Translations under genes and position numbers: made by a program
Part shown: positions 9,566-40,140 of the stretch, piece by piece
Numbering within the stretch: position 1 is the first letter of the stretch
Layout of the letters: every line of letters begins with the position of its first letter
Notes under the pieces: model-generated
Told to the model about the DNA's origin: nothing
Databases searched by the model: none
The model's input: the letters and a program-made list of their open reading frames with translations, nothing else
DNA from: Rhodosorus marinus CCMP1338
Taxonomy: Eukaryota; Plantae; Rhodophyta
Direction: 5' to 3'
DNA: 64,000 nucleotides
NCBI GenBank assembly: GCA_029953675.1
Contig: JAMWBK010000008.1
Span: 1,984,001-2,048,000 of the forward strand

Positions 9566-12500
9566 ATGGGGAAGATCGGGGGTTTTGGGGTGGCCTTGGC
9601 TTTGTTGGCGGGAATCACTGGCGGGTTGGTTTTTGATGCTGAGGACTTGGTTTCCACCGTTGCGGTGGAAGGAGATTTCCAGTCTATCCTGGACTTGGAC
9701 TGGATACCCGGGGATCTGTCACGCCTAGTATTGTGCGAGAAGCGCGGATTGGTGTGGTTGGTAATAGACGGGGCGCTTCAGTCCAAGCCGTTCCTGGATA
9801 TTTCAGACAAAATCGTTAACTTTGGGGCGAGGGGTTTAACGGCGTGTATGGTGGACGCCGACTTTGAAAACCACCCGTACTTTTACGTGTCCTACGTCGA
9901 TAATAGGCTAGTAGAGACGGACTTCCGCACCGGAACCAAGGGAGCAATTGTAGCCAGGTACAAGGTGACTAGTGATTTATCGGAGGCAATCAACCCAGTT
10001 ATTCTGATGGGCACACGATCTCCTCCAGAATCTGGATGTAGTAATCCAAATATTGCCAAGCGGGACAATATATGTCTGGAAGATAGGAGTCACAACATGG
10101 GGGGTCTAGTGATGAGCCCCGGCGGCAGAATTTTCGTTGGAATTGGTGATGCCTCCAGCGTCTCACAGTTTACAGAACTGCAGATCCGAGCTCAGAATCT
10201 GGATTATAAGACTGGGAAGGTTCACTGCATCACGAGAACGGGCGTGGCGTGCGGGAACAATCCTTTTATCCAGAACGGTGATCGGACTACCAATAGAGCC
10301 ACCGTGTGGACTTTCGGAGTGCGAAACCCTTTCAGAATGTGTTGGGATCCAGTTCTTCAGATACCACTGATTGCCAATGTGGGCATGGCGGGCTGGGAGA
10401 GCGTATGGCCTGGTTATCGGGGTTTCAATTATGCATGGCCCTGTAAAGAAGCTCAGCGCACCAATCTGAAGGCAACTTTCTACGAGATATGTGAGCAGAT
10501 CAAGGATGGCGAGATTGAAGTACATTCAGATCGCACCCTCTGGGACTATAGGCACACCTTGGGAGCTGCGGCTACTGGTGTTGTTCGCTTACACTCGAAC
10601 AAGTGGCCGGCGCAGCTGAGAAACAAGATCGCAGTTGCTGACTACACAAACAGTTGGGTCAAGTTAATCGAGGTCGACGAGAATGGCCTAGTCGGATCCC
10701 ACATAGACTTCATTTCAGAGGCTGGTGGACCTGTCCAGCTGAAAGAGGGCCCAGACGGTTGGCTCTATATGGTATCAATTCTTACGCAACAGGTGATCCG
10801 GATAGAGTATAGGGTGAATACGAGCAGACCAGAGGTTGTGAGAGTAGACCCACCCCCGGACTTTGAGAACACGGAGTTGACGTCGGACATTTCGGTGAAG
10901 TTCTCGAAGAATATTGACTTCTCCACCGTGACGAAGATGTCCCTCAGGATTGTTGAACTTTCGACTGTTACGAGGGTCCATGTGGACTACGATTGGAAAC
11001 GCGCTACGAACACGGTGACTGCACGTCCTCGGAAAAGACTGGAGCGTAATTTGCGGTACAAGATCTCTGTGACAACAGAGATCACTGACACTGCTGGTCG
11101 AGAGCTGAAGAGCAAGTTTTCCTCCTATTTCCGAACCGGTTCCGGTTATGCTCTGCGCTTGTCGGAATTAGATTGGAAATCTTCTACCAATGGAGGTTCC
11201 GAGTACCCCGTTTTCAGAGACAAGCAATTTCCTACTTTTGCAATTGACGTGCCACCGCTTAGAATTCGTGGTACACTGTTCGAGAGCGGAATCGCCATGA
11301 TCGCACCTGGCAAGGTAGAGGTGGAGGTACCGAACGGGTGCACTAGACTGCAAACATATGTTGGTGTCGACGATGTCGTTCAGCAGCTCGACACCACAGG
11401 GCTGTTCTTCGTCGTTAAGGAGAGGACCAATAACGGCGTCAAGAAGCTGCACGAAGACGATTTTCCGGTGCTTAGGACTGACCGGCCCCTATTTATTGAT
11501 GTGGACGTGACTGGAGCTAGTAGTGTGATTTTGGAGACGCAGAAGCCAGGCACGACTACCAATAACGACTCGATTGCGACCTGGGGTTTACCAAATTTCA
11601 GATGCGGAGGATACGACGACGACAAAGCTAACGTAGCGAGCATCAGGCCAACCGGTGTCATCGACATAAGCGATTCAATTATCGTCAACTTTTCAGAGTC
11701 TATGGACATAGCGTCAACCACCGCAGCGACCCAGATTCTTCTGCCGATTGCGTTGGGAGGCTATATCATTGGGTTCAGAACAGAATTCACCCCGGATCAG
11801 AAAACCATGGTGTTGACTCCGAACGAGCCACTAGACTATGACACCGAGTACTCATTAACGATCGCCGAGAGCGCAATGGACCTCGCTGGCAACGGCCTGA
11901 AAAACACATTTGTGCGAACTATCAAGACCGAGGTCGTTAAACTTTCTGGTGAAGTGTTTCAGCTTGTGGATATCAAGACGCAGGCGATCAGAAATCCTGA
12001 GGGTGTAATGATCTGGCGCGAAGGCCATGAGATGCGGATACGAGCAGGCACAGATGTTGACTACCTAGTTCCTGGAAACTGTGGAGCGTTGAACCTTTCT
12101 ATGAGGGCCAGGTGGAACCCTGCTAGGGTTGTCGTTAAAGATTTGGCGGGAGATGCTATTTGTGACACCGGCCTCATACCCAAGGGCAGGACTGCGGACC
12201 TCATTTGCGATATCTCAGGACAAACTCGGATAAGGCTATCGATTCGAGGATCTGGTATAGCGCACATCTACAAATCCACCATCAACTGCGCGTTGGGCTC
12301 CATGAACCCGCGATGTGAATTTGGGGACGAGATCCCAGAGAAGTTCAGGATCGGGGATGTCGTGAGATTCAGTGCCAAATGCTACAACTACCAGGGTGAT
12401 TTGATCAAGAAGGAGGAGCTCTTTTGGATAGTTTCACTTATTCATTGTCAGACGATATGTCACAGACATGAGGAATTGACGGAAGGGGGAGTTTCTGGCG

Positions 12501-12853
12501 GGATTTATGAGGTTCCAGACCATGGAGACTTCTTCTTCCTTGAGATTCAGGTATTTGCGAGCAGCGGCGGAAGGCGTGGGGTCTCCACTATTCAAATACG
12601 TCCGACCACTGCTTCAGTGACAGTGACCACGATGCCTTCTGGATTGACAGTGTCTTCTGATTCATTATCTGGACCATCTCCGCTACGTTCTATGACTGTG
12701 GTCGGCGCCAATTTCACAATCAACGCTGTGGAAAGAGAGCGTGGTCAACGGTTTGCCTTTTGGGATGATAATACGCAGCTAGGCCCGGCTCGCTTCTTGC
12801 TCTTCAATACGCAGGGAGGCCGTACCTACAACGCAGTCTACCACGACAATTGA
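9566..12853 (+). CDS. Secreted glucose/sorbosone (PQQ-type) dehydrogenase-like protein with Ig-like and NPCBM/NEW2-like domains, 1095 aa
   Basis: Uninterrupted ORF with an N-terminal hydrophobic signal. GSDH beta-propeller motifs: HNMGGLVMSPGGRIFVGIGD, GKVHCI, VWTFGVRNPFRMCWD, GPVQLKEGPDGWLY. Two SbsA/Big_5-like repeats (ISVKFSKNID...ITDTAGREL; IIVNFSESMD...AMDLAGNGL). NPCBM-like module (LSELDWKSSTNG...LQTYVGVDD). C-terminal LIHC...CHRH...PDH module. Confidence 0.88.
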   Translation: MGKIGGFGVALALLAGITGGLVFDAEDLVSTVAVEGDFQSILDLDWIPGDLSRLVLCEKRGLVWLVIDGALQSKPFLDISDKIVNFGARGLTACMVDADFENHPYFYVSYVDNRLVETDFRTGTKGAIVARYKVTSDLSEAINPVILMGTRSPPESGCSNPNIAKRDNICLEDRSHNMGGLVMSPGGRIFVGIGDASSVSQFTELQIRAQNLDYKTGKVHCITRTGVACGNNPFIQNGDRTTNRATVWTFGVRNPFRMCWDPVLQIPLIANVGMAGWESVWPGYRGFNYAWPCKEAQRTNLKATFYEICEQIKDGEIEVHSDRTLWDYRHTLGAAATGVVRLHSNKWPAQLRNKIAVADYTNSWVKLIEVDENGLVGSHIDFISEAGGPVQLKEGPDGWLYMVSILTQQVIRIEYRVNTSRPEVVRVDPPPDFENTELTSDISVKFSKNIDFSTVTKMSLRIVELSTVTRVHVDYDWKRATNTVTARPRKRLERNLRYKISVTTEITDTAGRELKSKFSSYFRTGSGYALRLSELDWKSSTNGGSEYPVFRDKQFPTFAIDVPPLRIRGTLFESGIAMIAPGKVEVEVPNGCTRLQTYVGVDDVVQQLDTTGLFFVVKERTNNGVKKLHEDDFPVLRTDRPLFIDVDVTGASSVILETQKPGTTTNNDSIATWGLPNFRCGGYDDDKANVASIRPTGVIDISDSIIVNFSESMDIASTTAATQILLPIALGGYIIGFRTEFTPDQKTMVLTPNEPLDYDTEYSLTIAESAMDLAGNGLKNTFVRTIKTEVVKLSGEVFQLVDIKTQAIRNPEGVMIWREGHEMRIRAGTDVDYLVPGNCGALNLSMRARWNPARVVVKDLAGDAICDTGLIPKGRTADLICDISGQTRIRLSIRGSGIAHIYKSTINCALGSMNPRCEFGDEIPEKFRIGDVVRFSAKCYNYQGDLIKKEELFWIVSLIHCQTICHRHEELTEGGVSGGIYEVPDHGDFFFLEIQVFASSGGRRGVSTIQIRPTTASVTVTTMPSGLTVSSDSLSGPSPLRSMTVVGANFTINAVERERGQRFAFWDDNTQLGPARFLLFNTQGGRTYNAVYHDN

Positions 12854-16229: not shown

Positions 16230-18922
16230 CTCGATTTTCCGCGGTGCGTCGTTTGCATTTGCAACTACTTCTGTCTTCCGGGTGGGTGTGTTGCGGGGCC
16301 TTTCCTATTTGGGTTGGGTTTGGTCGATTATTCTCTCGGTGCGGTTTCATATTGGTGGTGCAACGTTTCCTTTGCGCATTCCCTCAGGATGGTAGGGATA
16401 TCTCCGCGCTCGACGGAGCCTCCTCCCAAGGAGGCACTGCCAGGTGGGGGACTCCGTGTTCGCCTCAGCTGCGGCACCTTTTCTTCCGAGGTTGACTTGG
16501 AAGGCGCTTCTGGCACCCAGGCGCGTGCACTTATCTCCGCTGTCACCAGCCTGATCACGGCTGTGAGTGATCGTGGAGTGCTCCCTCAGCTCACCCAGAA
16601 GCTAGGTGGGCTGGAATCGGGATTGCTGGCCAGGTCAAATTCAAATTCGGACGAGAATTTGAATTGCACCAGAGTGGCAGCGTTGGCTGAAGGCAGTCAA
16701 CATCAGGTCAATCAACATGAACCTGTCCCGGGACAGGCGAGGGCGGTTGCTTCTGCGCGGGACAGTACGACGTTGGGGAGAGGCAGGCCGGGCCAAAACG
16801 CGCCTCAGCGCTCGGGGACTCGAGGCAATGGTGGTGGTGTGGAGGAGACTGCAGACGCTCAGCATATGTGGCGGTCACAAGTCCTGTGGCAGGTGTGGAG
16901 GAGACTGCAGACGCTCAGCATATGTGGCGGTCACAAGTCCTGTGGCAGGCGCGCCCAAGTGAGCTCTGCCGCCCACCGCCGGGGGGCACCCGCCTCGGTC
17001 CTTCGCCGAGTGAAGGAACGCCGGTATGCTGAGAGTATGGCCAGTATCCCCTATGCTGAGCGTCATTCTCACAGATTCCAGCCTTTCATACTAGAAACGC
17101 TCGACAGGCAGCAGATGAAGGTATTCTCGCGATAATAGCCCGGCTTCCCCAATGTGCCATCCCCGGGGCCAGTGAAATCCGAGCAGAACACCTGCAAGGG
17201 GCCACCCAGGACGTCCAAGTGGCTCTAATCCGCGTTCTCCGGCAACTAGCTACGGCAGCAGAGAAGTTTGCACCCCCGATGACCTGGGCAATGCGTAGCA
17301 GCAGATTACTGCCGATCGGAAAACCCACGAGCAACACAACCGCTGCAACGAGACCTGGCACCCGGCCGGTTAGAGTCCTGGAGAAAATGCAGGACTCTCT
17401 CAGCGCGACATCAGCGTGAAAGCCGCAGCCATCCATTGGCTACGCATTCACCGTATTGAGCGGATCCTTTTGGAGCGCTTCGCGTCGGGGCCACGCCACC
17501 TGCGTGCAGCCGTCTCTACCCTTTTCGACCGGGAGAGGCGCCTTGTGTTGACGTCGAGTCACAGGGCGGACTTTCAGAGGTTGGTAGAGGGCTCTGCTTC
17601 CGACACCACTTCCAGTGAGAGTGGTGAGGGCATGTCGGTGGAGAACGCCCCCATAACTTTGTTGAAGCCCGAGGCAGCTATCCCGCGAGCCTCGAGGAGT
17701 GGGCGGCTTCCACTCTGGTGAGGTAGGCGGAAAACGTGCGAGGGCCGACTCCCCCGGGTATAAGGGGGAGAAGCACGATTAGCTCCCCGGGTGCGGCTGC
17801 GAGGTCGCAGCCGATGGATTTGCGGTCTTATGTCGTGAAGGAGGGCGGAGACTGGGGCATTTGGCGTACGCGTTTACGAAGTTGGCTCCGGCGTTGGATC
17901 TCTTTGGAAGGAGGCTTGCTTTCCCTCCGTGGCAGAATTCCGTCTGTCGTCCTACCTCGCGGCGAGCTCTTAGTGGCTGGGACCACCCTGGACTTCATCT
18001 TCACGAGCCTGGCGAGTAACCTTCAGGACACCGTCATGTGGGAATTTCTGGGGGTCATGCCACGCCTGATTCTGACCCCAACTCACACGCCGGAGCGCGG
18101 ATGGCGTGTCCGAGATCGGCTTGCCATGTTCTTGAAAGGGGAATTAGAGGTGTTGCAGCAAAGCTACTTAGCGTCCTTGCAACCATCTGTTCGTCGGACC
18201 CAGACTGGAACCGTCTCGCCCCTGACGGCTCGAGTACAGAAATTCGGTCGCGGTGGGCAACTTGAGTCGAGCGGCACGAGTTCTGGAGGGCCAGGTGCCT
18301 GTCCTCACCTACGAAGAAAGTCTCGCCCAGACGGTGTCATCTTTGTTCCCCTCGTCCGACGTGGACCTGCTACACGAATTCGAGGCCTTCTTGGACCGTC
18401 CGGAATTGTCCCGGTTTCAAATCGACCTGAGTGTCAACGAGTCTGATCTGGAAGATTTGCTTCGTACCTCGCGTCGCGGACGCTGTCTTGGCACCTCAGG
18501 GCTTCGCACCGAACTATTGCAGGCTTTGGGCAAGCCTGGCCGGAACGCGCTGCTCAAGATCCTGAATAAACTGTTTCAGGGCACATCGGGTGCGTCTGCC
18601 CTATGGGAGCATCTCCGAAGGGCACAACTCTGCTTGCTGACGAAGCCTGGCCATCAGCCGGCCCACCCGCGTCTACGGCCGATCGGTATGGTCGAGAGCC
18701 TATGGAAGCTTGCTGGAAGGTGGCTATGCCAGCGCCTTCGCCAGCGGGTCACAGCTTTTATGGCGCCCTTGCAATTGAGGCGTTTAAGTGTCTCCCTTTG
18801 GCGATATTCCAGCCACATGCTTTCCGAGGCGTGCCATCGGCGCCTTGGGTTGCATGCTTCCCTCCCTAGTTAATAGTTTATCTTCACGCCTTGCGTAGCG
18901 CTTCAGGCTATGCTAGTAAAGT
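16230..18922 (+). mobile_element. Rearranged lineage A pieces (ORF1 N-terminus, RLE piece, ORF1 C-terminus, ORF2 N-half, short 3' end)
   Basis: Contains SAVTSLITAVSDRGVLPQLTQKLG (ORF1), KAAAIHWLRIHRIERILLERF (ORF1), MDLRSYVVKEGGDWG (ORF2), RLRPIGMVESL (RT) and an A 3' end at 18775-18922. A 56-bp tandem duplication lies at 16837-16948. Confidence 0.85.
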
Positions 18923-19830
18923 TGGACCAGCCCTCAGGTGGTCACCAGCTCCCGGCTACTGCGGGGGCACGTGGTGGCCGCAAGGGGGGCGCTTCGTACG
19001 CCTCGGTCTTGCGGAAGGGCACCACTGCCACACGTACGGCGGCTATGCTCCGTTTCCTACCATCTCGCGAGCCTCAGGATGGACCTGTGGAGACCACTCT
19101 CCAATTTCTGTGGGTGCGAAATGTGCGGCCCCAGACTACACGAGGCCAGGTTCCGTCTATGCGAGACTTCCGGGACACTTTTGCGGAATCGTTTGGGTGC
19201 AGCCGGGGTGATTTCTTCTTCGCAAACTATGAGGGCCGCGATGTGCTGTTTTTGGTCTCCGCAACCGCCGCCAAGTACCTGGAGGCCTTGCTGGCGACGC
19301 CTACCGAGCAGTGGCCTGAGAGCGCCCGGTGGCTGCGCTGCAACCCGCAGGTGGTTTTGCACTTCGATTTTGACCGTTTCTCGGGCAATTTCCCGTCTTC
19401 GGGAGAAACGGCAGGGCTCTCTGAGCATGAGAGCAGCGTGAAGGCGGCAGCGATCCATTGGCTACGGATTCAGCGCCTTGAGAGGATCTTGTTGGAGCGG
19501 TTCCGGTCGGGCCCTCGTCACCTGCGCATGGCGGTGGCCAGCTTCTTCGATCTGGAGAGGCGACTTGTGCTGACTTCGCCCTACAAGACAGAGCTGCAGC
19601 GGTTGGGGATTTTGGAGGGCTCTGCTTCCAGCACCACTTCCAGCGAGAGTGGTGAGGCAGGGGAGCAGACTGAGGGCATGTCGGTGGAGGACGCCCAGGT
19701 TACTTTGCTGAAGCCCGCGGGATCCGTTCCACGAGCCTCGCGGAGTGGGCGGCTCACGACTTTGGTGCGGATAGGAGGTAAGAGAGCGAGGACCGACTCC
19801 CCCGGGTCTAAGGGGGAGAAGCACGATTAG
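18923..19830 (+). CDS. Lineage A ORF1 (N-truncated) with RRM-like core
   Basis: Open frame containing LQFLWVRNVRPQT...RDFRDTFAESFG...VVLHFDFDRF (19099-19380) and a basic C-terminus GGKRARTDSPGSKGEKHD*. Confidence 0.8.
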
Positions 19831-19841
19831 CGCTCCAGGCA

Positions 19842-19861
19842 CGGCTGCGAGGTCGCAGCCT
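19842..19861 (+). promoter_or_regulatory. Conserved GC hairpin immediately 5' of the A ORF2 ATG
   Basis: CGGCTGCGAGGTCGCAGCC(G/T) then ATG. Also at 17794, 32130, 59047, 60268 and 56609-56628 (minus strand). Function is inferred. Confidence 0.65.
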
Positions 19862-22311
19862 ATGGATCTACAGTCTTATGTCCTGAAGGAGGGCGGAGAC
19901 TGGGGCATTTGGCGGACGCGTTTTCGGAGTTGGCTCCGGCGGTGGATTTCTTTGGAAGGAGGCTCGCTTCCCCTCCGTGGGGGCATTCCCCCAGTCGTCC
20001 TCCCTCGTGGAGACCTTCTAGTAGCTGGAACCATTCTCGATTTCATCTTCACGAGCCTGGCTCGTAACATTCGGGACACAGTCATTTGGGTTTTTCTGGG
20101 GGTCATGCCGCGCCTGATTCTGGCCCCCATTCACACATCGGAGCGCAGATGGCGAGTACGAGACCGACTGGCCCTGTTCTTGAAGGGAGACTTCGAAGTA
20201 CTACAGCGCAGCTATTTGGCGTCGTCAGCACCATCCGCCCGTCGGACTCGGCATGGCACAGTGTCGTCCGTGCCGGCTCGAGTACAGAAATTGGTAGCAG
20301 TGGGCGATTTAAGTCGAGCGCCGCGGGTTTTGGAGGGCCAGGCGCCTGTCCTCCCCTACGATGATAGTCTCGCCCAGACGGTGTCGTCTTTGTTCCCTGA
20401 GTCCGACGTGGGCTTGTCCCCTGAATTCGAGGTATTCTTGGACCGTCCGGAGTTGGCCAGGTTTCGCATCGATCTGACGCTCAGTGAGTCTGACCTGGAG
20501 GATTTGCTTCGTACCTCGCGTCGGGGACGCTGTCCCGGACCCTACGGACTAAGAACAGAGCTATTGCAGGCCCTGAGCTAGCCTGGACAGAGCGCGCTTC
20601 TGAGGATCCTTAACAAGTTGTTCCAGGGCGTATCGGGTGCGTCTGCGCCATGGGAACATCTCCGGCAGGCACAGCTTTGCTTGCTCACGAAACCTGACCA
20701 CCAGCCGGCCCACCCGCGTCTCCGGCCGATCGGGATGGTGGAGAGCCTACGCAAGTTAGCCGGGAGGTGGCTATGCCAGCGCCTTCGCCAGCGCGTCACA
20801 GCTTTTATGGCGCCCTTGCAAGTAGGGGTGGGATTTTCTGGGGGTTGCGAACTGATCACCCATGGGATCGAGCTATAACGCGCCAGTAGGCCGGAGTGGG
20901 GAGTCTTGGTGGTTGATTTCCGGAACGCATTCAACAGCGTGTCGCGGACGCATGCGCTAGAGGTGCTCCGACGGGTGTTTCCGGAGGCGTGGCCGTTTCT
21001 ATCGGGTATTTACGGAGGGGAGAGCCTCCCCTACTTGACAACGGAGGGCACTGTTTTTCAAGCACATACTGGCGTCCAACAAGGCGACCCTTGCGGACCT
21101 CTTCTTCATGCCTGTGCCCTACAGATCGTACTTTTACGTCTTTCAACTGAGGTCTCGGATCTTCGAATCTGCGCGTACCACGATGACGTAACATTGCTGG
21201 GCACCCCTGAGACCCTGGCTAGGGGGCTGACCGAGATCGAAGCGATTGCACGTCGCGTCGGTTTGACTGTGGAAACAGAAAAATGTCGCTTTCTCCCCCC
21301 GAGGGACGTGTCGCTGGCCTCTCTGCCACCCACTCTGCGACTAATCAGCGAACGTGAAGGGTTCGAACACCACGACGTCGGATTGGGGACTGACAACTTT
21401 GTCCAAGCATCCTGCGAGCGAGTTTTGGCACGGCACAAGCAACTCACCGACGCCATTGAGCACCTACCCGACAGCATGCTGCAATCGGCCTGCTTGCTTT
21501 CCCGCTTTGTGCCGGTCCCAGACTCAACTACTGGTTGCGCAGCCTGCCTCCAGCTTGGGGCTCGTGGATCGCGGCTAAAGCCGACGAGATAACCCTGAAA
21601 CACTGGGGAACGCTCTTGGATGAGCCCCTCGATCTTGAAGCTGCTCCCGACAGCGACTTGATTCGTGCACAGATCGCTCTACCGTTGCGATTAGGGGGAT
21701 TCGGCGTCGCAGACCGTGGGCTGGTATGCTCGCCAGCGACGGTTGCCTCCTGGGCTACCGCGCTGCGAACGTTGGTGACCTTCCAGATGCGAAGTGCCTG
21801 CCTCTTGGCTCGAGCTTTGACCAACGAGGATCCAGTGACCCTGCCGCCCCCGCTTTTGACAATTTATGATGGTCTTCAACATGCGTTCAGGAGGTGCAAC
21901 GCCGTGCCGGACGCAAATCGGTCCCGCTTTCGTTCCTGGAGGGAGCTGTTATGGGGACGAGCTGAAGCGATTGAGGATTCTCCCCTCGACCGGGTTCTTG
22001 CCGATGACGGAGAGGCTAGCCCCGGGTCACCTGTTGCAGACTACCCGGGTTTGAGCCGATTGTGGAGCTCCCGCACTGATGTGATTCAACATAGCCTCAC
22101 CTGGGGCCAACACAGTGCCGCTCACACAGTCATGCTCAATTCTCCTCTTGCCGATGACGGAGAGGCTAGCCCCGGGTCACCTGTTGCAGACTACCCGGGT
22201 TTGAGCCGATTGTGGAGCTCCCGTACTGATGTGATTCAACATAGCCTCACCTGGGGCCAACACAGTGCCGCTCACACGGTCATGCTCAATTCTCCTCTCA
22301 CGCCGCCTACC
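19862..22311 (+). pseudogene. pol: Lineage A ORF2, RT part (in-frame stops and frameshifts)
   Basis: Motifs RLRPIGMVESLRKL, QVGVGFSGGCE, VDFRNAFNSVSR, GVQQGDP, AYHDDV and ALPLRLGGFG. Stops at ~20579 and ~20876. Confidence 0.9.
21997..22299 (+). repeat. 150-bp in-frame tandem duplication inside A ORF2
   Basis: LADDGEASPGSPVADYPGLSRLWSSRTDVIQHSLTWGQHSAAHTVMLNSP occurs twice (CCGATGACGG at 22001 and 22151). Confidence 0.95.
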
Positions 22312-22364
22312 GAACGAATGGTTTAATCGGAGGCTGAAAAAAAAACCCCGAGGGGAAAAAAAGA

Positions 22365-25300
22365 CTAAGCGCGGCGAAGTACTCGCGCCTCCAACATCAA
22401 AGCGGCATTCATGCGCCACAGCAGGAAACTTAAGCGGGTAAACAACGATTGAAGACGGTCAGGGCGTTCGCGGAACAACTCCCGAAGCCAGCGAGAACCA
22501 ACAGAGTCCATGAACCCAAAGCACTCAATGATCAGGGGTACCAAGCGATGTGCTAGTGCCGAAGCACGAACACCAGGGGAAGACAAAGCCCCCGCGTATT
22601 TGATCTCTTTGCGGCGTCTCATGCTGGCGGCGGCAGATCCACGGCGCTCCCCCGCAGCCGGGAGATAACGACTAGCTTGAGGGTTAGGAACAGCAAGATC
22701 AACGTATGTGGTACGGCGGCTGTCGTCACAGGTGATCACCAGGTCGGCTACACGGCGTTCATCATTTTGAAAGTCCGCGACGGGTAAAGGTTTCTCACGT
22801 TCGATTTCCAGACCGGCTTGCCGGACTATAGGCCGAAGTTCCCGGTATAACAGGTTCAAGATCCGTGTGTGGCGGTGGGTTCGAGCACCTTTCACCGCCG
22901 GGCAACTAGCGAGCAGGTGGGCGCCAAAATCTGCGTTGTCTTCAGTCTGAGAGCAGAGAGGGCACGACGAACCCATCTCGTACGGCCAAGGGGGCTGATG
23001 TAAGCCGAGGTATAAGCGCAGTGAAGTACGCACTTCGAAATCCGACAGTGTGAGTGGCGGAAAGGCTGGTACGGTCATGAGCCACTGAGAGCTAAGAACC
23101 CCTCCAAGACTACGTAGGCGGGCGCGAGCGCGAGAAGATGAGACCATCTGCGCGAGGAGTCGGCCATATGCAGCACGGTGCAAGTCCCAAGAAAGGATAT
23201 CTTGCAGCGCATCCGTGCGTGCTTGAGCTCGGCTCCCAGCGCGCTGGGAATCATCAGGAGGATCAACTGGAACTTCTTCTTCTGCGGCAACCACTGGGTC
23301 AATCTCCCCTAGAACAGGTTCAGGCGCAGGACGAATCCCCGGGGCGGAGCCTCGAGAGCGGTCAAATACAGCTCGCCAGTCAGGAAGACGGGGTTGAACG
23401 GTTTCGGGGAGACTAGTACAGGAATTCAGGGCGGTTTGGAGCTCCAGAAACAAGTCTTGGGCGCTTTCCGGTACGCTGGGAAGCAAGACACCCCGCGAGA
23501 GGCTCGCCATCAAATTGCGGAACTTCGAGATACCCAAGCTGCTCAAAGTGGGAAGTGCGGTTCCCCAGGCCCCTACTGCGGCTGCAGGTTGGACCACAAC
23601 ACGATTGCAGAGGCCCAGTCCCCCCAATCGCAATGGGAGGCCTACCTGGGCGCGCACAACATCACAGGTGGGTCGCGGCAGAGCGCTCAGCTCTTCATCG
23701 AGAAAATATCCCAGGTCACGGAAACTTTCAGCATCCGCACGAGTGGCCAACCACCGGCCCCAATGAGTTGGAAATGAGCGAAGCCAATAGGTTAACCGCT
23801 GACTGCAACAATACCGAAACAGCAACAACGAGCACTGGAGAAAGCCCGGAGGTAGCCGTCGAAGCTCTGCAACCAGCTGTCTGTGCTTACCGAGGAGCTG
23901 CAGCAACTCGCCTTCAACGAAGGACGGCGACCCGTAGGGGATGCCTAAGTGGACAAAACCATCCGGTCTCCAAATATCCTGGAACGACGCAGGTACCTGC
24001 TGCTCTTGTGCAGCTACACCTCCCCAGTAGAACGATTTGTGATGATTAACCTCCAGGTCAACCCGCGAAGCCAAGGAGCGGAGACGATCATAAGCGAGTG
24101 CTAGAGTATCAGGGGGCCCCAGGAGGCACACGTCGTCGTGGTATGCAACCGTACGAACCTGCGGGAATTCGCAGCGAAGACAAAGCAAGACGAGTTGTAG
24201 TCCACAGGCATGTAGGAAAGGGGACAAGGGATCACCCTGTTGTACCCCTGTGCGCGCCGCAAACGTGTGTGAGGAAGCGCCAAGGGTGTCATAGGTAGCC
24301 CCACGACCAAGCGGAGAATAAAGTCTACTAACAAAGGGAAAGCCTACAGGGAAGACTTCGCGCACCACGTGCATGAGAGCCGGACGAGAGACGCGGTTGA
24401 ACGCATTGGTAAAATCTACAGAGAGGAGCCCAGAATCTGGGGAGTACGCCATTTCCGAACGGAGTAAAACAGACAACAACTCACAGCCACCACGATAGCC
24501 CACGCCTAACTGCACGTGCCCAAAGAAACGGCGGGATTCGGGAACCAAGATTTTCACTAACCATCGCGCCGCCAATTTGCGGACCACCTCAACCAGGCCA
24601 ATAGGGCGAATAGCAGGGCTCGAGGCCGTGTGGCCGGGCTTCGAAAGCAGACACAACTGAGAACGCCCGACCAAGAACCACGCACACTCACACAGGGGAT
24701 CACCATTCACAAGCGCTTCGACCACCCACGCCAACGCCTTCAAACCTTCATCACTTAAGAAACGGAGATATTCCACCCGCAGCCCCGAGGGCCCTGGGGA
24801 ACGGCCCTTCGGAGCATCATGAACCAACTCACGCACCGCCTCCAGATTGACCACTAACCGCGCACTGGGATGTGGCGCGGCGCGGTACTCTTCCAACACT
24901 GATTCAAACGAGGAGTCCCAAGGGGAGCCTTCCGAGGGAAAGAGCAAACGGAGCGGTGAAGAAAGATCATCGGAGTATGGAACCACAGGTTGCCGCTGCT
25001 GGAGGATCCCGGCTGCCCGCCGCAGATCACCGCCTGCCACCGCGTGACGCGCCCGATTCTGTCGAGAAGACCTAAAAGCTGAGGGAGCACTAGGAGAAAA
25101 GGAAGAGAGAGAAGCGAAATAAAGACGTTCGAGGTCCTCAAAGTCGCCGGAAAGGAACATTTGCAGTTTTCGGCGAGGGTGGACCCGGCGAGGATGTGGG
25201 TTGAGGGGGACGGTAGAGGAGGTGAGCACGAGGCGGGGAAAAAGAACAAGAGTTCCCAGCGAAGAGAGCAGTGAGGGTTCGCGGGGACCTGCTGCCAGAG

Positions 25301-25507
25301 AAAATCCAACACCAATCCTAGGGGCTTATGAAGTCGACGAGGGAGCCGTACGGCCGTGCTCTGACGACAAAGGGGAAGGGAACCGTCCGGGTAGGAGGCG
25401 ACAAGGTGCGAAAACCACGAGAGAACACGCTCATGCCAGGCTGAGCGGTCACTGGTAAACAGGGGTAACCGGGACGACACGCACGCGGAGGAGGAAGACT
25501 CAGACAT
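22365..25507 (-). CDS. pol: Lineage B ORF2: RT-CCHC-RLE, one frameshift near 25235
   Basis: A 954-aa open frame with IRPIGLVEVVRKL, QLGVGYRGGCE, VDFTNAFN, GVQQGDPLSP, AYHDDV, LPLRLGGLG, CPLC...HLLASC, RTHRH, ADLVI...YVDLAV, KEIKY and ECFG. The N-terminus (MSESSS...) lies in the adjacent frame and aligns to the A ORF2 N-terminus. Confidence 0.92.
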
Positions 25508-26630
25508 CGGGCCTCCCCTCAGTCGGGAAGGCAGATCGAATATCCGGAGGAGGTGCCTCGGAGGGAGGCTCAGGAGCCGCACGACGCTTACGTGGAGGGC
25601 GCACGAAGGAACTAAAAGACCTGAAGAAAGTAGACACAGGGTTTTCAGCAGCGGAGTCTTGACTGAGGGTGTCCAGAGCCAGCGGATTCGGAGAGGCCGA
25701 TGGTGCTTCTGCCATGTCGGTGTCACGAGCCTCGGAGGCAGGGCGAGGGGAGGAAGGGTGCTCAAGAGTCGGCGGCAGAAGGTCAAACGCAGGGTGGGCT
25801 TCCAGCAGGGTGGCCTCAGTGGAGAGGAAGGCCTCTAGCGCGGTGCGGAGGACCCCGCGAGGAGGAAAACGCGCGAAGAGGCTCGCCTGTATGCGCGAGA
25901 GCCGCGCCGCATGAGTGTGTAGCGCGACAACCGAAGCCTGCGAGGCATCCAGGTTTTGCAAGGCCGACGGAGGAACCCAGCCGGCGTCAAAACGATCGAA
26001 CTCGACAAACAAAGAGACATGAGGACGAGTCAGTATCATGTTGGCCAGAGCAGAGCGCTGGGGCGCGGGGGTGGTTACAAGCGATTGAAGGAACTGGTAA
26101 GCCGAGTCAGTAACAAGAAAACAGGCATGAGGGCCCGTGAAGTCCACATATAGGAATTCAGACGGGGCGACCCCAAGGGAGGAAGCCATGGTGTCGCGAA
26201 AATCGCGGTAGTGGACGGGCGCGCGGCCCCGACCACGAGAGGGGGTCTGGGGACGCACGTTCGTCATCCAAACAAAGTGGAACGGAGATAGTTGGCGAGA
26301 AGAGTCAATAGGGATGTGTTGTGGCATCATACGCACCATTGCCGTCGTGCGTTGTTCAGAAGAGCCCCTGCGTAGGACCTGCGAATAGGTCGCACGTGGG
26401 GCACTGGAGGGAGCAGGATTCGGGCCCGACGCGGGCCCAGGAGGCGTCTGTCCTTGAATAGGGGTAGGCCAGTCGGAATCAGGAATGACCGGAGCGGAGC
26501 GCTCGGGTCGGGTGGAGGCAGGCCCCGCTGTACCGTGCGGATCCGCGGGGACGGGCACCGGGGGGTATGGGGCAGGCGCGGAGGCGGAGAAGCGCTCCAA
26601 ATAGGCGATCAGCAGGGGCAGGCGGTGTTC
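25500..26630 (-). CDS. Lineage B ORF1 (N-truncated) with RRM-like core
   Basis: Open frame with a Pro-rich N-part, then FHFVWMTNVRPQT...RDFRDTMASSLG...FVEFDRF (~25989-26282) and RPPRKRR. Homologous to A ORF1. Confidence 0.82.
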   Translation of the reverse strand, partial: EHRLPLLIAYLERFSASAPAPYPPVPVPADPHGTAGPASTRPERSAPVIPDSDWPTPIQGQTPPGPASGPNPAPSSAPRATYSQVLRRGSSEQRTTAMVRMMPQHIPIDSSRQLSPFHFVWMTNVRPQTPSRGRGRAPVHYRDFRDTMASSLGVAPSEFLYVDFTGPHACFLVTDSAYQFLQSLVTTPAPQRSALANMILTRPHVSLFVEFDRFDAGWVPPSALQNLDASQASVVALHTHAARLSRIQASLFARFPPRGVLRTALEAFLSTEATLLEAHPAFDLLPPTLEHPSSPRPASEARDTDMAEAPSASPNPLALDTLSQDSAAENPVSTFFRSFSSFVRPPRKRRAAPEPPSEAPPPDIRSAFPTEGRPDV

Positions 26631-27460
26631 CCGCCTACCACTGCCGCTCGTCTCCGCGGCATGGGAGGCCACCTCTCGCACTTGTGGTTAACCACTCTAC
26701 CGTCGTCAATGAGTCATCGTCTCGATGCTTTCCAGTTCCGTTCTGCCGCACGGATCTATCTCGGTTTCCCACAGGCTCCGTGGCACTCTAATCGGCCGTC
26801 TTTCTGTCAGGGATGTGAGAGCCGGATTGACGCTTGTGGCTACGACTTCCTGGGTTCCTGCGGACTGTTGAGAGGTCTCCGTACGAGGCGTCACACTCGC
26901 CTCAAGTACATCCTCAGCGAATTTTTTGACTCGGATATGGCATACGGTTGAGGTTGAGTCGGAACTGCCGAGATCCATCTCGGACTCTGCACCGCCCCGT
27001 TGTATAGCCGATCTCCTCGTCTCCGACGCTGCTGCCAGACGCTCAACATATGTGGACCTTGCGATTACCTGCCCCGTGGCCAGCGCCCACCTCACCGCAG
27101 CCGCCCGCCGCCGGGGGGCCGCAGCTTCAGCCCTTCGAAGAGTTAAGGAACGACGGTATGCTGAGAGCATGGCCAGTCTGCCTTGTCGCTGAGGGTCGAT
27201 CTCACCGGTTCCAGCCATTCATTGTGGAAAGCTTTGGTCACGTCGATAAGTCGGGTTTAGAGTGGTTGCGGAAATGTTTTGCTGAGCATCCTACTGAATA
27301 TTTGGCGCTCTTGAGGCGTTTAAGTGTCTCCCTTTGGCGATATTCCAGCGACATGCTTTCCGAGGCGCGCCATCGGCGCCTGGGGTTGCATGCTTCCCTC
27401 CCTAGTTATTAGTTCATCTTCACGCCTTGCGTAGCGCTTCAGGCTATGCTAGTAAAGTCG

Positions 27461-28867: not shown

Positions 28868-29262
28868 TGGAAAGGCCCAGTAAGCCCAGTAAGCCCAGGA
28901 AAGCCCAGTAAGCCCAGGAAAGTCCAGTAAAGCCCAGAAAGCCCAGGAAAGTCCAGTAAAGCCCGGTAAAGCCCATAATAAGCCCAGAGTAGAATATGAC
29001 AAGACGAAAGGTAGAAGACAGACTTGGGTTGACTCCCCCGCTCCTTTTTGTCGGGTTTTGTGGCAACAAGCCAAGGAAAGTCCAGGAAAGTCCAGGAAAG
29101 CCCAGTAAGCCCAGGAAAGTCCAGTAAAGCCCAGAAAGCCCAGGAAAGTCCAGTAAAGCCCGGTAAAGCCCATAATAAGCCCAGAGTAGAATATGACAAG
29201 ACGAAAGGTAGAAGACAGACTTGGGTTGACTCCCCCGCTCCTTTTTGTCGGGTTTTGTGGCT
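28868..29262 (+). repeat. (AAAGYCCAGK)n minisatellite within a ~197-bp tandem duplication
   Basis: About 20 degenerate 9-10-mers. GCCCATAATA occurs at 28971 and 29168, and GTCGGGTTTTGTGGC is also repeated at a 197-bp offset. Confidence 0.92.
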
Positions 29263-29397: not shown

Positions 29398-30115
29398 GGC
29401 TCAAACCCTGGCTCTAAAAATCGAAGGCGCTGAGATGGCCAGCCAACCTCTAGAAGGGAGGGAAAACCTTCACCAAAAACGACAACGCCCCATACGACTG
29501 TAAGCAGAGGTACACGTTCGGGCCGCTTCTATCAGCCCCGAAGTCAGGAACTCCGACAGGGGAGAAATGCCCACCTGACCTGCGACTACTGCGGGAAACG
29601 GGGGCATACACAAAGCTTCTGCTGGAATGACCCGGCGAGCGGTGTACAACCCCCTCCCCGGGTGAGGGATGTTCGACGCACCCTCACCCCTTGCGCGCAG
29701 TTAAAAGATCCGCAAGAGTAGGGACCGCCGCCGCTGTTGCTAAGAAAGGCGTTAAGATTCCCTTCAGCAAGGAATGGATGGTGACGGGAATGCTCAATGG
29801 ACAGAGATACCTCTATTGATTGACACTGGTAGCAGCCATTCAGTCTTAAGAGGGGTCCCTGACGCCACACCAATTTACCCCACAACGCACGGGAAATTGG
29901 ACACTGCCGCACCGGGAGCATCAATAGAAATCTTGGGTGCGGTAAACGAACCTGTACAATTTTTATTTTTTTTTGGGAGGCCACGCATTCAAGTGGGAAC
30001 CCTGTGTCGTCAGAGAAGCCGCAAGTTCGGGCTATTTGGGACAGGACTTCTTAGAGTACCAAGCGCAGATTGACTTAACGAGTCGTACTTTGATTTTACA
30101 AACCGACAACGAAGA
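29398..30115 (+). pseudogene. Ty3/gypsy gag C-terminus plus aspartic protease, frameshifted
   Basis: ALKIEGAE matches the gag at 1.7-2.3 kb. Also CDYCGKRGHTQSFC (CCHC), LLIDTGSSHS (protease) and LGQDFLEYQAQIDL. Confidence 0.85.
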
Positions 30116-30342
30116 ATGGAGAATATGAACGAGGAAAAATATGAAGAGAATAATGAAGCGGAATTCACCGACAATGATGAAGAAAAATGAGAAAACCAGA
30201 ACCACAACGAACAAAAAGCTGGAAAACACTTCACCGAAGATTCAGATTGCGGGAGCAACCACAACAAAGGAAAATATAAAGACCTCGCCGATGATCAAGA
30301 ACGAAGGAGTAATCACGATGGAGTTGCGTAGATACTGGATTT

Positions 30343-30371
30343 CAGCCTCCGATTAAACCATTCGTTCGTTC
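30343..30371 (+). mobile_element. 29-bp lineage B 3'-tip insertion with 12-bp TSD
   Basis: GATACTGGATTT (30331-30342), then CAGCCTCCGATTAAACCATTCGTTCGTTC, then GATACTGGATTT (30372-30383). Confidence 0.92.
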
Positions 30372-30528
30372 GATACTGGATTTTGTGTTGTGGTGGGTTT
30401 TAGTGGTTTTTTTTTTTTGGTTTTGGTGGCATAGGCTGTTGGTCTAATCGCGGAATTCTCCTTGTTTTAGCCTTGCCTATCGCTTTAGGCTATGCTTGAA
30501 AAGCCCGAAAACCCCAGTGGTTAGTATA

Positions 30529-33500
30529 CGTGTGGGTGTCCGGTGCTAGTTTTCGGGTTTTGCGTGACGAGTGGGTTCTTCGGTGCCAGGCGCTTCTCTC
30601 TGCTGCCTTTCCCCCCGTTTTTTCGGGTTTTGTGGTTGGTAGTCGGGTCATTCACCTTCTGGTTGTTGGGTCGGGGATTTTTCTCCTGCGGAGTTGGGTG
30701 GCGTGTGTTTTCGGCGGGGGAATTGGTGGTTAGAGTATCGTCAATAGATTCTCTCGTGATGGTAGGGGGTTTCTTCGCGCCATGCTCCTTCGGGAGCGGA
30801 GCTCCCTGGCAACGAGGTGTCTTTGGGAGTTGGGCACCGGGTATGTCTAAGTTCGGGCCCCTTCTCTACGCAGGTGGAACTGCAGGGCGCCACTGGTATG
30901 GAGGTGTCAGCCCTCATGTCAGCCATCACCAGCCTGATCACCGCGGCGGGGGACAAGAGCGTCCTGCCCCAGCTGACCCAACGCCTTGGTTTGCTGGAAT
31001 CCAGCCTCCTGGCGCCTGCTCTAAAACTTGACACGGTGGCCACGGTGGCTACACGGCCCCCAGGCAGTCAAAATCAAGGTCATTCTGCGACTGTCCCCGA
31101 ACAGGCGCGGGCTGCTGAGCCCGCTATTGGTGGTCCCTCGACTGGCGCTTCTTCGGGGAGGGGTGCAGCTATCTCCACTCCTTTGCACGTCCCCCCAGCG
31201 GGAGCGGACTTTCCTGTGCTGGGCCAGCCCTCAGGTGGAGGACAGCTCCAGGCCAAGGCGGGGACACGTGGTGGCCCTAAGAGGGGCCCGTCGTACGCCT
31301 TGATTTTATGGAAGGGTACCACAGCCGCGCGTACGGCGGTTATGCTAAAATTTTTGCCCTCTCGCGAGTAGCAGGACGGACCTGATGAGACTACTTTGCA
31401 ATTCCTTTGGGTACGCAACGTTCGGCCAGAGCCTACACGGGGCAAGGTCCCATCCATGCGTGATTTCCATAATACTTTTGCGGAATCCTTGGGCTGTTGC
31501 CGAGACGTCTTTTTGCGAGCTACGAGGGCCGAGATGTTCCGTTCATGGTCACTGCAACAACGGCCACGTACCTGCAGGCCCTACTGGCCAAGCCTACCGA
31601 GCAATGGCCTGCGAGCGCCCGCTGGTTGCGGCCTCATCCCCAGGTCGTTCTGCACTTTGACTTTGACCGTTTCTCGGGCACTTTCCTGTCTCCCGGAGAA
31701 ACGGAAGGACCCTCTCAGCACGAAACCAGCGTAAAAACCGCAGTCATCCATTGGCTACGCCTTCACCGCTTTGAGCTTTTTGGAGCGTTTCGCGTCGCGG
31801 CCGCGCCACCTGCGTGCAGCCGTCTCTACCCTTTTCGACCGGGAGAGGCGCCTTGTGCTGAGCTCGAGTCACACGGCGGAGTTACAGAGGTTGAGGGTAT
31901 TAGAGGGCTCTGCTACCAACACCACTTGCAGTGAGAGTGGTGAGGAAGGGGAGCAGAATGAGAGCATGTCGGTGGAGAACGCCCCTATTACTTTGTTGAA
32001 GCCCGAGGGAGCTATCCCGCGAGCCTCGCGGAGTGGGCGGCTGACCACTCTGGCGAGGTTAGGCGGAAAACGTGCGAGGACCGACTCCCCGGGGTCTAAG
32101 GGGGAGGAGCACGATTAGCTCCCCGGGTACGGCTGCGAGGTTGCAGCCGATGGATTTGCGGTCTTATCTCGTGAAGGAGGGCGGAGACTGGGGCGTTTGG
32201 CGTACGCGTTTACGAAGTTGGCTCCGGCGTTGGATCTCTTTGGAAGGAGGCTTGCTTTCCCTCCGTGGCAGAATTCCGCCTGTCGTCCTACCTCGCGGCG
32301 AGCTCTTATTGGCTGGGACCATCCTGGACTTTATCTTCACGAGCCTGGCGAGTAACCTTCAGGACACCGTCATGTGGGAATTTCTGGGGTCAGGCCGCGC
32401 CCGATTCTGGCCCCAACTCACACGCCGAAGCGCAGATGGCGTGTCCGAGATCGGCTTGCCATGTTCTTGAAAGGGGAATTAGAGGGAGGTGTTGCAGCAA
32501 AGCTACTTAGCGTCCTTGAAACCATCCGTTTGTCGGACCCGGACTGGAACCGTCTCGCCCCTGACGGCTCGAGTACAGAAATTGGTCGCGGTGGGCAACT
32601 TGAGTCGAGCGGCGCGAGTTCTGGAGGTCCAGGTGCCTGTACTCCCCTACGAAGAAAGTCTCGCCCAGACGGTGTCATCTTTGTTCCCCTCGTCCGACGT
32701 GGACCTGCTACCCGAAGTCGAGGCCTTCTTGGACCATCCGGAGTTGGCACGGTTTCAAATCGACCTGAGTCTCAACGAGTCTGATCTGGAAGATTTGCTT
32801 CGTACCTCGCGTCGTGGACGCTGACCCTCAGGGCTTCGAACTGAATTATTGCAGGCCTTGGGCAAGCTTGGCCCGAGCGCTGAAGATCCTGAACAAACTG
32901 TTCCAGGGCACATCGGGTGCGTCTGCCCCATGGGAACATCGCTGAAGGGCACAACTTTGCTTGCTCACGAACCCTGGCCATCAGCCGGCCCACCCACGTC
33001 TCCGTCCGATCGGTATGGTCGAGAGTCTATGGAAGCTAGCCGGAAGGTGGCTATGCCAGCGCCTTCGCCAGCGGGTCACAGCTTTTATGGTACCCTTGCA
33101 AGTGGGGGTGGGATTTCGGGGGGTTGCGAATTGATCACCTATGGGATCGAGCTGCAGCGTGCCTGTAGGCCGGACCGGGGAGTTTTTGTGGTTGATTTTC
33201 GAAACGCATTCAACAGCGTCTCGCAAACGCATGCGTTGGAGGTGATCCGACGGGGTTTTCCGGAAGCGTGGCCCTTCTTCTCTGGTCTTTCCGGAAGCGG
33301 GAGCCTCCCCTACTGGACCAGGGAGGGCACTGTTTTCCAAGCACATACTGAAGTCCAACAAGGCGATCCTTGTGGGCCTCTACTGCATGCCTGTGCCTTG
33401 CAGCTCGTTCTCCTGCGTCTCGCGACTGAAGTGCCGGCTCTTCGTACTACGCCTATCACGACGACGTGATCTTGCTGGTCGCCCCTGAAACCCTGGCTCG

Positions 33501-35232: not shown

Positions 35233-35440
35233 TTTAAGTGTCTCCCTTTGGCGATATTCCAGCCACATGCTTTCCGAGGCGCGCCATCGGCGCCTGGGGT
35301 TGCATGTTTCCCTCCCTAGTTATTAGTTCATCTTCACGCCTTGCGTAGCGCTTCAGGCTATGCTAGTAAAGTCCAATAAAGCCCTGTAAAGCCCATTAAA
35401 GCCCAGTAAAGCCCAGTAAAGCCCAGTAAAGCCAGTAAAA
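35233..35440 (+). mobile_element. Short A 3' end with long (CCCAGTAAAG)n tail
   Basis: About 135 nt of A 3' end, then TAGTAAAGTCCAATAAAGCCCTGTAAAGCCCATTAAAGCCCAGTAAAGCCCAGTAAAGCCCAGTAAAG. Confidence 0.9.
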
Positions 35441-35489
35441 ACATACCGCCGCGCACCACCAGGATTCATTGCTCGCCCTCCTCTACTTA

Positions 35490-36250
35490 GACCCAACATA
35501 GGGCAGGATTGACGGCTGCGGGTAACACTTTCTTGGATCATGCGGACTGTTGAAAGATCTCCGCACGAGGCGTCACACTCGGCTCAAGTACATACTTAGC
35601 GATTGTTTGACCAAGATAGGCCACACGGCGTGTGTGTATTCGGAACTGCCTGTACAGCCTCGGGCACGGCGCCTCCCCGTTGCATCGCAGATCTCCTGGT
35701 TTCGGACACCGCGTCAGATGCTTGGCATATGTGGACCTTGCGGTCACATGTCCTGTAGCAAGCGCCAATCTCGGTCCCGCCGACCGCCGCCGGGGGGCAG
35801 TCCCCTCGGTCCTTCGCCGAGTGAAGGAGCGCCGATACGCTGAGATCACGGCTAGTCTCCCCTCCCCCGAGGGTCGTTCTCACATGTTCCAGTCATTCAT
35901 CAAAAAAAACTTTTGGCCGCTCGGAGAAGTCGGGATTGGAATGGCTGAGGAAATGCTTTACTGACCATCGTGTAGAATACATTTTATCGCTTTGCGTAGC
36001 GTTTCAGGCTATGCTGGTAAAGCCCAGTAAAGCTAGTAAAGCCCAGTAAAGCTAGTAAAGCCCAGCAAAGCCAGTTGAATACTCAGTGAAGTCCAGTAGA
36101 AGCTTGGAACTCTTACGCCGTTTCAATGTCCCTCTTTGGTGATACTCTAACAGCATGGTTGCCGAAGTGCCCATCGCCGCCTGGGCTTGCACGCGCTTCG
36201 CTCCGTAGTTCTTAGTTTTCGTTTCACGCTTTGCGTAGCGCTTCGGGCTG
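35490..36250 (+). mobile_element. Older A-like RLE fragments with tail repeats
   Basis: RTRRHTRLKYILSDCL and AYVDLAVTCPVAS...KERRY. Tail repeats at ~36017-36105 and another 3' stub at 36115-36250. Confidence 0.8.
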
Positions 36251-40100: not shown

Positions 40101-40140
40101 TACGACCACACCACCGACGACTGGCTCATCCTTCGGGTTT

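Follow-up and report, generated by a model that had tools for sequence, protein, structure and literature searches.

Two nested CRE-like retrotransposon copies of the red alga Rhodosorus marinus share a conserved upstream open reading frame with a predicted alpha/beta core

A stretch of 64,000 nt from the genome of the red alga Rhodosorus marinus CCMP1338 (contig JAMWBK010000008.1, positions 1,984,001 to 2,048,000; the whole stretch is referred to as the window) was analyzed with a focus on two retrotransposons without long terminal repeats (non-LTR retrotransposons) of different families, elements A and B, of which B is nested within A. The window consists of repeat-rich eukaryotic DNA, in which the repeats exhibit a GC content of ~58% as compared to 46-50% in the background. 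In tblastn and blastn searches, many copies and fragments of family A were located across the window, and family B was found as one near-complete copy and two 3' fragments. Both elements carry two consecutive open reading frames (ORFs), the first of which (ORF1) is related between A and B, while the second (ORF2) encodes the reverse transcriptase (RT). A prediction made earlier from the letters of this DNA (the original prediction) had assigned the elements to two divergent, CRE-like lineages with a restriction-like endonuclease (RLE) and had proposed that they share a separate ORF1 with an RNA recognition motif (RRM)-like core. The features of the locus are listed by position; pLDDT denotes the predicted local distance difference test score, and b and a denote beta strands and alpha helices.

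16389-16613, plus strand: genuine start of A ORF1 (MVG...) with its conserved N-terminal block, as seen in another A copy; the block also starts at 43254 in a third copy
18923-22311, plus strand: left part of element A, a 5'-truncated degenerate copy (blastn of 30001-35800 against the window)
18923-19830, plus strand: 5'-truncated remnant of A ORF1, frame still open, ~155 N-terminal codons gone, stop codon TAG at 19828-19830
19099-19380, plus strand: predicted alpha/beta core of A ORF1 (b1 LQFLWV, a1, b2, b3, a2, short helix, b4 HFDFDRF; AlphaFold2 model m441ce62f7acc, pLDDT 66-75)
19423-19572, plus strand: two long helices of A ORF1, net basic, residues 172-197 and 203-221 (predicted by AlphaFold2)
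19774-19794, plus strand: basic patch GGKRART of A ORF1, kept in other A copies and in P0001
19831-19861, plus strand: ORF1-ORF2 spacer of A, 31 nt, with ORF2 in the +1 frame
19862-22311, plus strand: N-terminal region and RT of A ORF2 (LRPIG 20720, QQGDP 21077, YHDDV 21176; RVT_1 E 2.7e-13)
22303-22311, no strand: left copy of the 9-bp target-site duplication CCGCCTACC
22312-26630, minus strand: element B, 5'-truncated copy nested in A, 3' end ...GATTAAACCATTCGTTC, no poly(A)
22365-25507, minus strand: B ORF2 (start codon ATG at 25507, RT motifs at 24129-24611, RVT_1 E 3e-10; one frameshift near 25229-25240)
25500-25507, minus strand: overlap ATGTCTGA of the B ORF1 stop and the ORF2 start, with ORF2 in the +1 frame
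25500-26630, minus strand: B ORF1, 5'-truncated, starting ...EHRLPLLIAYLERF
25581-25601, minus strand: basic patch RPPRKRR of B ORF1
25797-25946, minus strand: two long helices of B ORF1, model residues 152-177 and 183-201 (predicted by AlphaFold2)
25989-26282, minus strand: predicted alpha/beta core of B ORF1, FHFVWMTNV to FVEFDRF (AlphaFold2 model mb49e13024335)
26631-26639, no strand: right copy of the 9-bp target-site duplication CCGCCTACC
26640-27459, plus strand: right part of element A, C-terminal CCHC/RLE region and 3' end ...CAGGCTATGCTAGTAAAG
26640-27459, plus strand: C-terminal motifs of A, spread over three frames (FCQGC 26802, RHTRL 26889, IADLLV 27004, YVDLAI 27049)

A full-length member of family A measures ~4.7 kb, as in the copy at 30525-35231. 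The copy that was interrupted by B starts at 18923, where it directly abuts the 3' terminus (...CAGGCTATGCTAGTAAAG) of a preceding, internally deleted A copy. The A ORF1 originally listed at 18910-19830 (+) does contain the peptides quoted from it, but its ATG at 18910 is not the start codon of element A, since it is situated within the 3' terminal sequence (...GGCTATGCTAGTAAAG) of the preceding fragment. The true start (MVG) belongs ~155 codons further upstream and is visible in the copies at 16389 and 43254. Head-to-tail A fragments were also observed elsewhere, for example as 134-bp 3' ends in tandem at 35099-35365; the junction described here lies at 18899-18922. The 31-nt spacing between ORF1 and ORF2 recurs in the copy at 30525-35231 (32118 to 32150) and on the Logan contig L001 (1608 to 1640). 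A ORF2 is disrupted by in-frame stop codons at 20579-20581 and 20876-20878 and by at least three frameshifts, one of them near 21535-21592, and its endonuclease-equivalent motifs span 26802-27159. As B ORF2 is likewise frameshifted, both copies are dead.

The sequence CCGCCTACC, which flanks B on either side, is present once in the uninterrupted A copy (~34413-34421). The B ORF1 was originally listed as a 393-aa frame at 26681-25500 (-); the quoted peptides are present, but the first 17 codons (26681-26631) do not belong to B and consist of antisense A sequence and the target duplication. The other B 3' fragments (42274-42703 and 46586-46945) each exhibit a target duplication of their own, e.g., CGTTTTCATGTG, and the duplications measure 9 and 12 bp. 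No shared target sequence was found among the three B insertions, whose flanks are unrelated (a small sample), and copies of family A occur in varied insertion contexts. Therefore, there is little sign of sequence-specific targeting. The 3' ends of family A carry variable (TAAAGYCCAG)n decamer tails and those of family B a short ATTC-like tail. The 5' truncations, the target duplications and the lack of LTRs are hallmarks of target-primed reverse transcription, and the duplications, truncations and variable tails are ordinary signs of this process without a fixed target. Decamer arrays akin to TAAAGCCCAG, the unit of the family A tail, were also observed at 28869-29261, 35365-35439, 36013-36075 and 41935-41968; of these, the array at 28869-29261 (0.4 kb) could represent an expanded A tail or a satellite that such a tail has seeded.

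The kinship of the two ORF1s, which had been proposed from an alignment over ~160 aa, was borne out by BLASTP with 35% identity and 53% positives over 203 aa (E 4e-35), far beyond chance. The coordinates given for the cores proved exact (LQFLWVRNV from 19099 and FHFVWMTNV from 26282), both basic patches are present at the positions listed above, and the DNA of the two elements is indeed not alignable, as a full A copy matched nothing in B (22312-26630) by blastn at E <= 1e-10. The divergence between A and B is alike in both ORFs, amounting to 35% identity in ORF1 and, in ORF2, to 39% over 472 aa of the RT and 32-45% elsewhere. Since these divergences are similar, the two ORFs would have co-diverged, which points to the descent of both families from one bicistronic ancestor. 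The alternative, that one lineage recently took over its ORF1 from the other, was rejected on the same grounds.

A ratio of nonsynonymous to synonymous substitution rates (dN/dS; Nei-Gojobori) had been suggested as a check on ORF1, and the values obtained indicate purifying selection at a level similar to that of ORF2. Comparison of A ORF1 with the copy on contig L001, which stems from a different sequencing run and exhibits the identical layout of ORF1, 31-nt spacer and ORF2, yielded a dN/dS of 0.147 (dN 0.096, dS 0.65). The ratio was 0.11 for the predicted core alone, 0.30 for the acidic/basic tail and 0.165 for the neighboring N-terminus of A ORF2. Values of 0.16-0.29 were obtained among seven A pieces in the window and a value of 0.19 for B ORF1 against contig L004, while the A ORF1 N-terminal block (first 75 codons) gave 0.30 and the linker following it 0.77.

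An A-like (P0003) and a B-like (P0066) ORF1 contig were both found in JGI sample 3300016967, whose transposable element sequences closely match the window; the homologue of a host gene (P0073) is annotated as R. marinus MMETSP0011. Judging from its accession numbering, this sample is inferred to be an MMETSP culture transcriptome; read in this way, both ORF1 lineages would be transcribed in a close relative. Outside of such Rhodosorus-like sequences, no relative of ORF1 was detected in the searches made. A word-indexed protein search returned three matches and an exhaustive profile search of 1.84 billion representatives returned seven, all of them close relatives or fragments, metagenome contigs searched with A ORF1 and B ORF1 gave no matches, and a hidden Markov model (HMM) search of the six-frame translated window for a further ORF1 lineage recovered the known A and B copies alone.

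Both ORF2s identify the elements as RLE-type non-LTR retrotransposons, in agreement with the original prediction: an RVT_1 RT is followed by a C-terminal CCHC knuckle and by RH / E / (P)D / D-K endonuclease motifs, which correspond to the published restriction-like endonuclease motif scheme (PMC12857005). In B, the C-terminal motifs are located at 22596-22964 (C-x2-C...H-x5-C, RHT, E, (V)AD, D, K). Pfam gave RVT_1 alone in ORF2 and no match to an apurinic/apyrimidinic endonuclease-like (APE) domain, and no zinc-finger or Myb domain was found in the N-terminal region of ORF2 of either A or B, by Pfam or by eye. The best solved relatives of B ORF2 in the PDB are R2 chains (E 4e-12), slightly ahead of L1 ORF2p. 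Among the reference sequences, Cre-1_BM (CRE-II), CRE2 and SLACS gave the best BLASTP and phmmer matches to A as well as to B.

The RT phylogeny that had been called for was computed as a simple-distance neighbor-joining tree (429 columns, 200 bootstraps) with 20 reference RT-to-thumb sequences taken from supplement S5B of PMC5678591, a set without Ambal, Cnl1, MoTeR and Odin. A, B and an element of the red alga Pyropia (P0006) form a clade with 100% bootstrap support, apart from R2/R8/R9, R4/Dong, HERO and NeSL/Utopia, and the split that unites A, B and Pyropia with CRE-II and CRE is likewise supported by 100% of bootstraps. Within the CRE group, support for a position next to CRE-II was low (29%). 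The designation "CRE-like" is thus supported by sequence comparison, with the caveats that the tree is a simple distance tree, that some CRE subgroups are absent from it and that A and B show no site specificity, zinc fingers or poly(A).

A third CRE-like RT lineage, C, was observed in the window at 39462-40112. A relative of lineage C is present on contig L006 from JGI sample 3300016967, where a 247-aa ORF (229-972) is situated upstream of ORF2 (969-1784) with an ATGA overlap. By eye, this upstream ORF is colinear with the A/B core if one frameshift is allowed. Its candidacy as a member of the ORF1 family was rejected and it is not counted as such, because its resemblance to the A and B ORF1s falls short of significance (E 0.034 in pairwise BLASTP, 0.6% in hhalign and an hmmsearch score below that of shuffled controls). 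The layout of lineage C shows that the bicistronic arrangement is common in these red-algal elements. L006, a transcript contig of R. marinus, opens with A-like sequence in antisense orientation (1-115) and is therefore interpreted as read-through of a nested insertion, like that of B in A.

The complete A ORF1 comprises ~457 aa, including an additional N-terminal block that the copy at 18923 has lost. It begins with MVG(I/V)SP, and the block follows the pattern FS.EV.L.GA.G...AL..A.TSLITA....VLPQLTQ.LG.LES.LL. Downstream of it follow, in this order, a poorly constrained linker rich in Pro, Gly and Ala, a predicted alpha/beta domain of ~110 aa, a pair of long helices of basic character, a Ser-rich, acidic stretch and a basic tail. 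By eye, the beginning of the B remnant (HRLPLLIAYLERF) seems to match the end of the A N-terminal block. The basic tail with GGKRART might serve as a nuclear localization signal, which it resembles.

The original prediction that this domain adopts an RRM fold received weak support: a beta-alpha-beta-beta-alpha-beta order is predicted in both lineages, but no significant structure or sequence match was obtained. AlphaFold2 reached a mean pLDDT of 51 and a predicted template modeling score (pTM) of 0.43 with the A query (13-sequence alignment), and a mean pLDDT of 63 and a pTM of 0.57 with the B core query (15-sequence alignment). Both models exhibit b1, a1, b2, b3, a2, a short helix, b4 and two long helices, with a pLDDT of ~70-78 over b2-b3-a2 and the helices; the two runs are not fully independent because their alignments share most rows. 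RRMs ranked first or nearly so in Foldseek searches, with matches to ACF (2cpd), RBM30, Mex67, U2AF, eIF3b and Fox1, together with the RRM-like RNA-binding domain of DbpA/YxiN, at target-normalized template modeling (TM) scores of 0.44-0.60 (Mex67, 0.60). By eye, a hexamer similar to RNP2 ([LV]-W-[VM]-x-N-V) can be recognized in b1, and the sequence of a1, FRDTFAESFG, is reminiscent of the RRM helix "LrelFsqfG."

Several observations weigh against an RRM and, more generally, against an RNA-binding ORF1 protein (ORF1p). The models were built on 13-15 sequences that effectively represent two lineages. Foldseek against the PDB yielded nothing significant for either model (E 0.07-1, the best being 0.07), and the IA-2 ectodomain, uS10, Pop6/7, MORF, ACT, acylphosphatase and IS200 TnpA, which are other alpha/beta folds and mostly ferredoxin-like, are interleaved with the RRMs at similar scores; against BFVD, nothing was found for the B model at E <= 0.001. 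Pfam searches at E <= 10 with the ORF1s of A, B, P0066 and P0002 and with the N-terminal blocks gave DUF6158 and DACND alone, at chance level. The hhalign probability was 0.2% against seven canonical RRMs and 0.06% against the RRM and C-terminal domain (CTD) of human L1 ORF1p. In the possible third lineage, the aromatic position of the RNP2-like hexamer is not conserved. Neither A nor B ORF1 contains a Cys/His knuckle, and in place of the long coiled coil of known ORF1p types, two helices of ~20-26 residues are predicted in both. Finally, the window holds no intact full-length copy.

A profile search of PDB sequences with ORF1 found no RRM and a single, non-significant match to 2ec2, an IS200 TnpA transposase (E 1.8 by hmmsearch, E 0.6-0.8 by Foldseek). 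This resemblance covers residues 64-117 of A ORF1 and 134-191 of B ORF1. At the position equivalent to the HUH motif, DVLFL is found in A, without histidines, and HACFL in B; since the motif is missing, homology to IS200/IS605 TnpA was rejected. The ORF1 core is likely a ferredoxin-like alpha/beta domain, perhaps a non-canonical RRM; a strict-sense RRM is possible, though not proven.

It is proposed that the locus holds two dead, 5'-truncated, nested copies of two bicistronic CRE-group families whose ORF1p has a role in RNA binding or in the ribonucleoprotein particle (RNP), a reading that is regarded as probable on balance, if only slightly so. In this model, one mRNA would be translated into ORF1p (~450 aa) and, at lower yield, into the ORF2 protein (ORF2p) by an inferred termination-reinitiation, for which the stop/start overlap AUGUCUGA in B and the 31-nt spacer in A would provide the setting. 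ORF1p would bind the RNA of its own element, multimerize and help to bring the RNP to the nucleus, and ORF2p would nick DNA via its restriction-like endonuclease and copy the RNA through target-primed reverse transcription. The RNA-chaperone activity that was originally suggested for ORF1p might conceivably be added to these functions, though purely as conjecture. A more far-reaching version, which is possible but rather doubtful, holds that an RLE-type lineage of the CRE group independently acquired, or kept from a deep ancestor, a real RRM-type ORF1p while losing its zinc-finger module.

The models themselves might mislead. With a mean pLDDT of 51-63, shallow alignments, seven relatives, all close, among 1.84 billion representatives and no match in family libraries, the fold prediction could be unreliable, and ORF1p could be a lineage-specific protein with another selected role, for instance in countering host silencing or as a structural scaffold. 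The same order of secondary structure elements was, however, obtained from two query lineages, with a pLDDT of 70-78 across b2-b3-a2 and the helices, and this explanation is considered unlikely, though it deserves to be taken seriously. Slightly less credence is given to the view that ORF1p is a DNA-binding, target-selecting subunit or adaptor with a generic ferredoxin-like fold other than an RRM, which would take the place of the zinc-finger/Myb module that ORF2 lacks. Among single-ORF elements, the closest relatives (P0004, P0006 and L005) carry N-terminal C2H2 fingers where A and B ORF2 have neither zinc finger nor Myb domain, the Foldseek matches are not specific to RRMs, and the lone profile match, albeit non-significant, is a DNA-binding HUH transposase (2ec2, E 1.8). 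Yet the B insertions have no common target, the A copies have variable decamer tails and lie at varied sites, and the HUH catalytic histidines are absent in A.

The position of ORF2 in the +1 frame relative to ORF1 in both lineages, with ORFs that abut or overlap, would also be compatible with an ORF1-ORF2 fusion produced by programmed +1 frameshifting or other recoding, by which the elements would function as single-ORF elements like other RLE-type retrotransposons. This is judged improbable in view of the ORF2 start codon ATG, which is conserved at the junction (three A copies read MDLQSY... and B reads MSESSS...), the 31-nt spacer that follows the A ORF1 stop, and the ATGnnTGA arrangement of B and ATGA arrangement of lineage C, which are typical of termination-reinitiation. 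That both copies are dead and truncated might finally suggest that the ORF1 similarity stems from a frame left open by chance or from the conservation of non-coding sequence in decayed repeats. This notion carries hardly any weight and was rejected, as it is refuted by homology at the protein level (E 4e-35) without DNA similarity and by the low dN/dS (0.11-0.29).

The presence of a conserved ORF1 under selection in two CRE-group lineages that have co-diverged, and perhaps in a third one, is relevant to the questions of when long interspersed nuclear elements (LINEs) gained a separate RNA-packaging protein and how many times this occurred. If the ORF1p were a real RRM-type protein, the two-protein RNP strategy, which is thought to be typical of APE elements, would also exist in the RLE class, in red algae and with an ORF1 family without known relatives. 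The family offers a compact, unexplored subject for structural and biochemical study and adds to the very thin record of red-algal retrotransposons.

Among the repeats of the window, intronless host genes were observed at 9566-12853 (+), 36446-37435 (-) and 54409-55428 (+). The first encodes a secreted-looking protein of 1095 aa with a pyrroloquinoline quinone (PQQ)-type sugar dehydrogenase domain together with NPCBM and Big_5 domains. It has several Rhodosorus paralogues, with 85% identity to a protein of R. marinus MMETSP0011 and 40-46% to paralogues from another R. marinus genome. These matches indicate a unicellular red alga near Rhodosorus (Stylonematophyceae) as the host. No Pfam match was found for the other two. 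LTR retrotransposon fragments are located at 1639-2301 (-), 29774-30073 (+) and 49695-50480 (+) and comprise a gag of Ty3 type that contains a CCHC knuckle, the DTGS motif of an aspartic protease and an RT of Copia type (RVT_2). An Rfam scan of the whole window gave no matches.

With respect to known systems, A and B share the RT, the C-terminal CCHC knuckle and the PD-(D/E)XK endonuclease with CRE1, CRE2, SLACS and CZAR and with the CRE-II elements Cre-1_BM and Cre-1_HM. Members of the CRE clade insert into spliced-leader genes or telomeric repeats, whereas no fixed target was seen for A and B in the small sample available. CRE ORFs also contain one or two zinc-finger-like motifs and the elements end in a poly(A) tail (PMC12278014), while A and B have no zinc-finger motifs in ORF2 and no poly(A) tail. 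According to a 2025 survey, most trypanosomatid CREs possess a single ORF (PMC12278014), and two ORFs are predicted in SLACS (PMC3447711). A bicistronic organization is therefore not without precedent in the CRE group, though it is unusual; the comparison of the A/B ORF1 with SLACS refers to the described two-ORF layout, not to the ORF1 sequence. In the RT, A and B are closest to elements of Pyropia and Porphyra (P0006, MMPV_010009; P0004; L005), a sister group with 32-35% identity and a similar stretch between the N-terminus and the RT. Unlike A and B, these elements consist of a very GC-rich single ORF of ~1450-1500 aa with two N-terminal C2H2 fingers and have no ORF1.

In the Khazina-Weichenrieder classification of LINE ORF1p, type I combines an RRM with CCHC knuckles (I/Jockey/R1), and type II consists of a coiled coil, an RRM and a CTD (L1). 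An upstream ORF, a predicted beta-alpha-beta-beta-alpha-beta domain, helices, basic regions and a proposed role in the RNP are shared between these types and the ORF1 of A and B, which differs from them in its domain order, in the absence of a CCHC knuckle and of a long coiled coil, and in that no similarity was detected at the level of either sequence or profile. ORF1 types I-V were described from APE-type clades, and ORF1 proteins are regarded as a trait of these later LINEs (PMC4120745); RLE LINEs represent the early-branching, site-specific, single-ORF group of the textbooks (PMC5678591). R2 exhibits the same layout of RT, knuckle and RLE, and A and B are placed outside of the R2/R8/R9 group in the tree. 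Retrotransposons of Rhodosorus are not mentioned in the literature searched. A and B are not a new kind of element; judged against published descriptions, what appears to be new is the combination, in red algae, of this conserved ORF1 family with elements that have neither zinc fingers nor target specificity.

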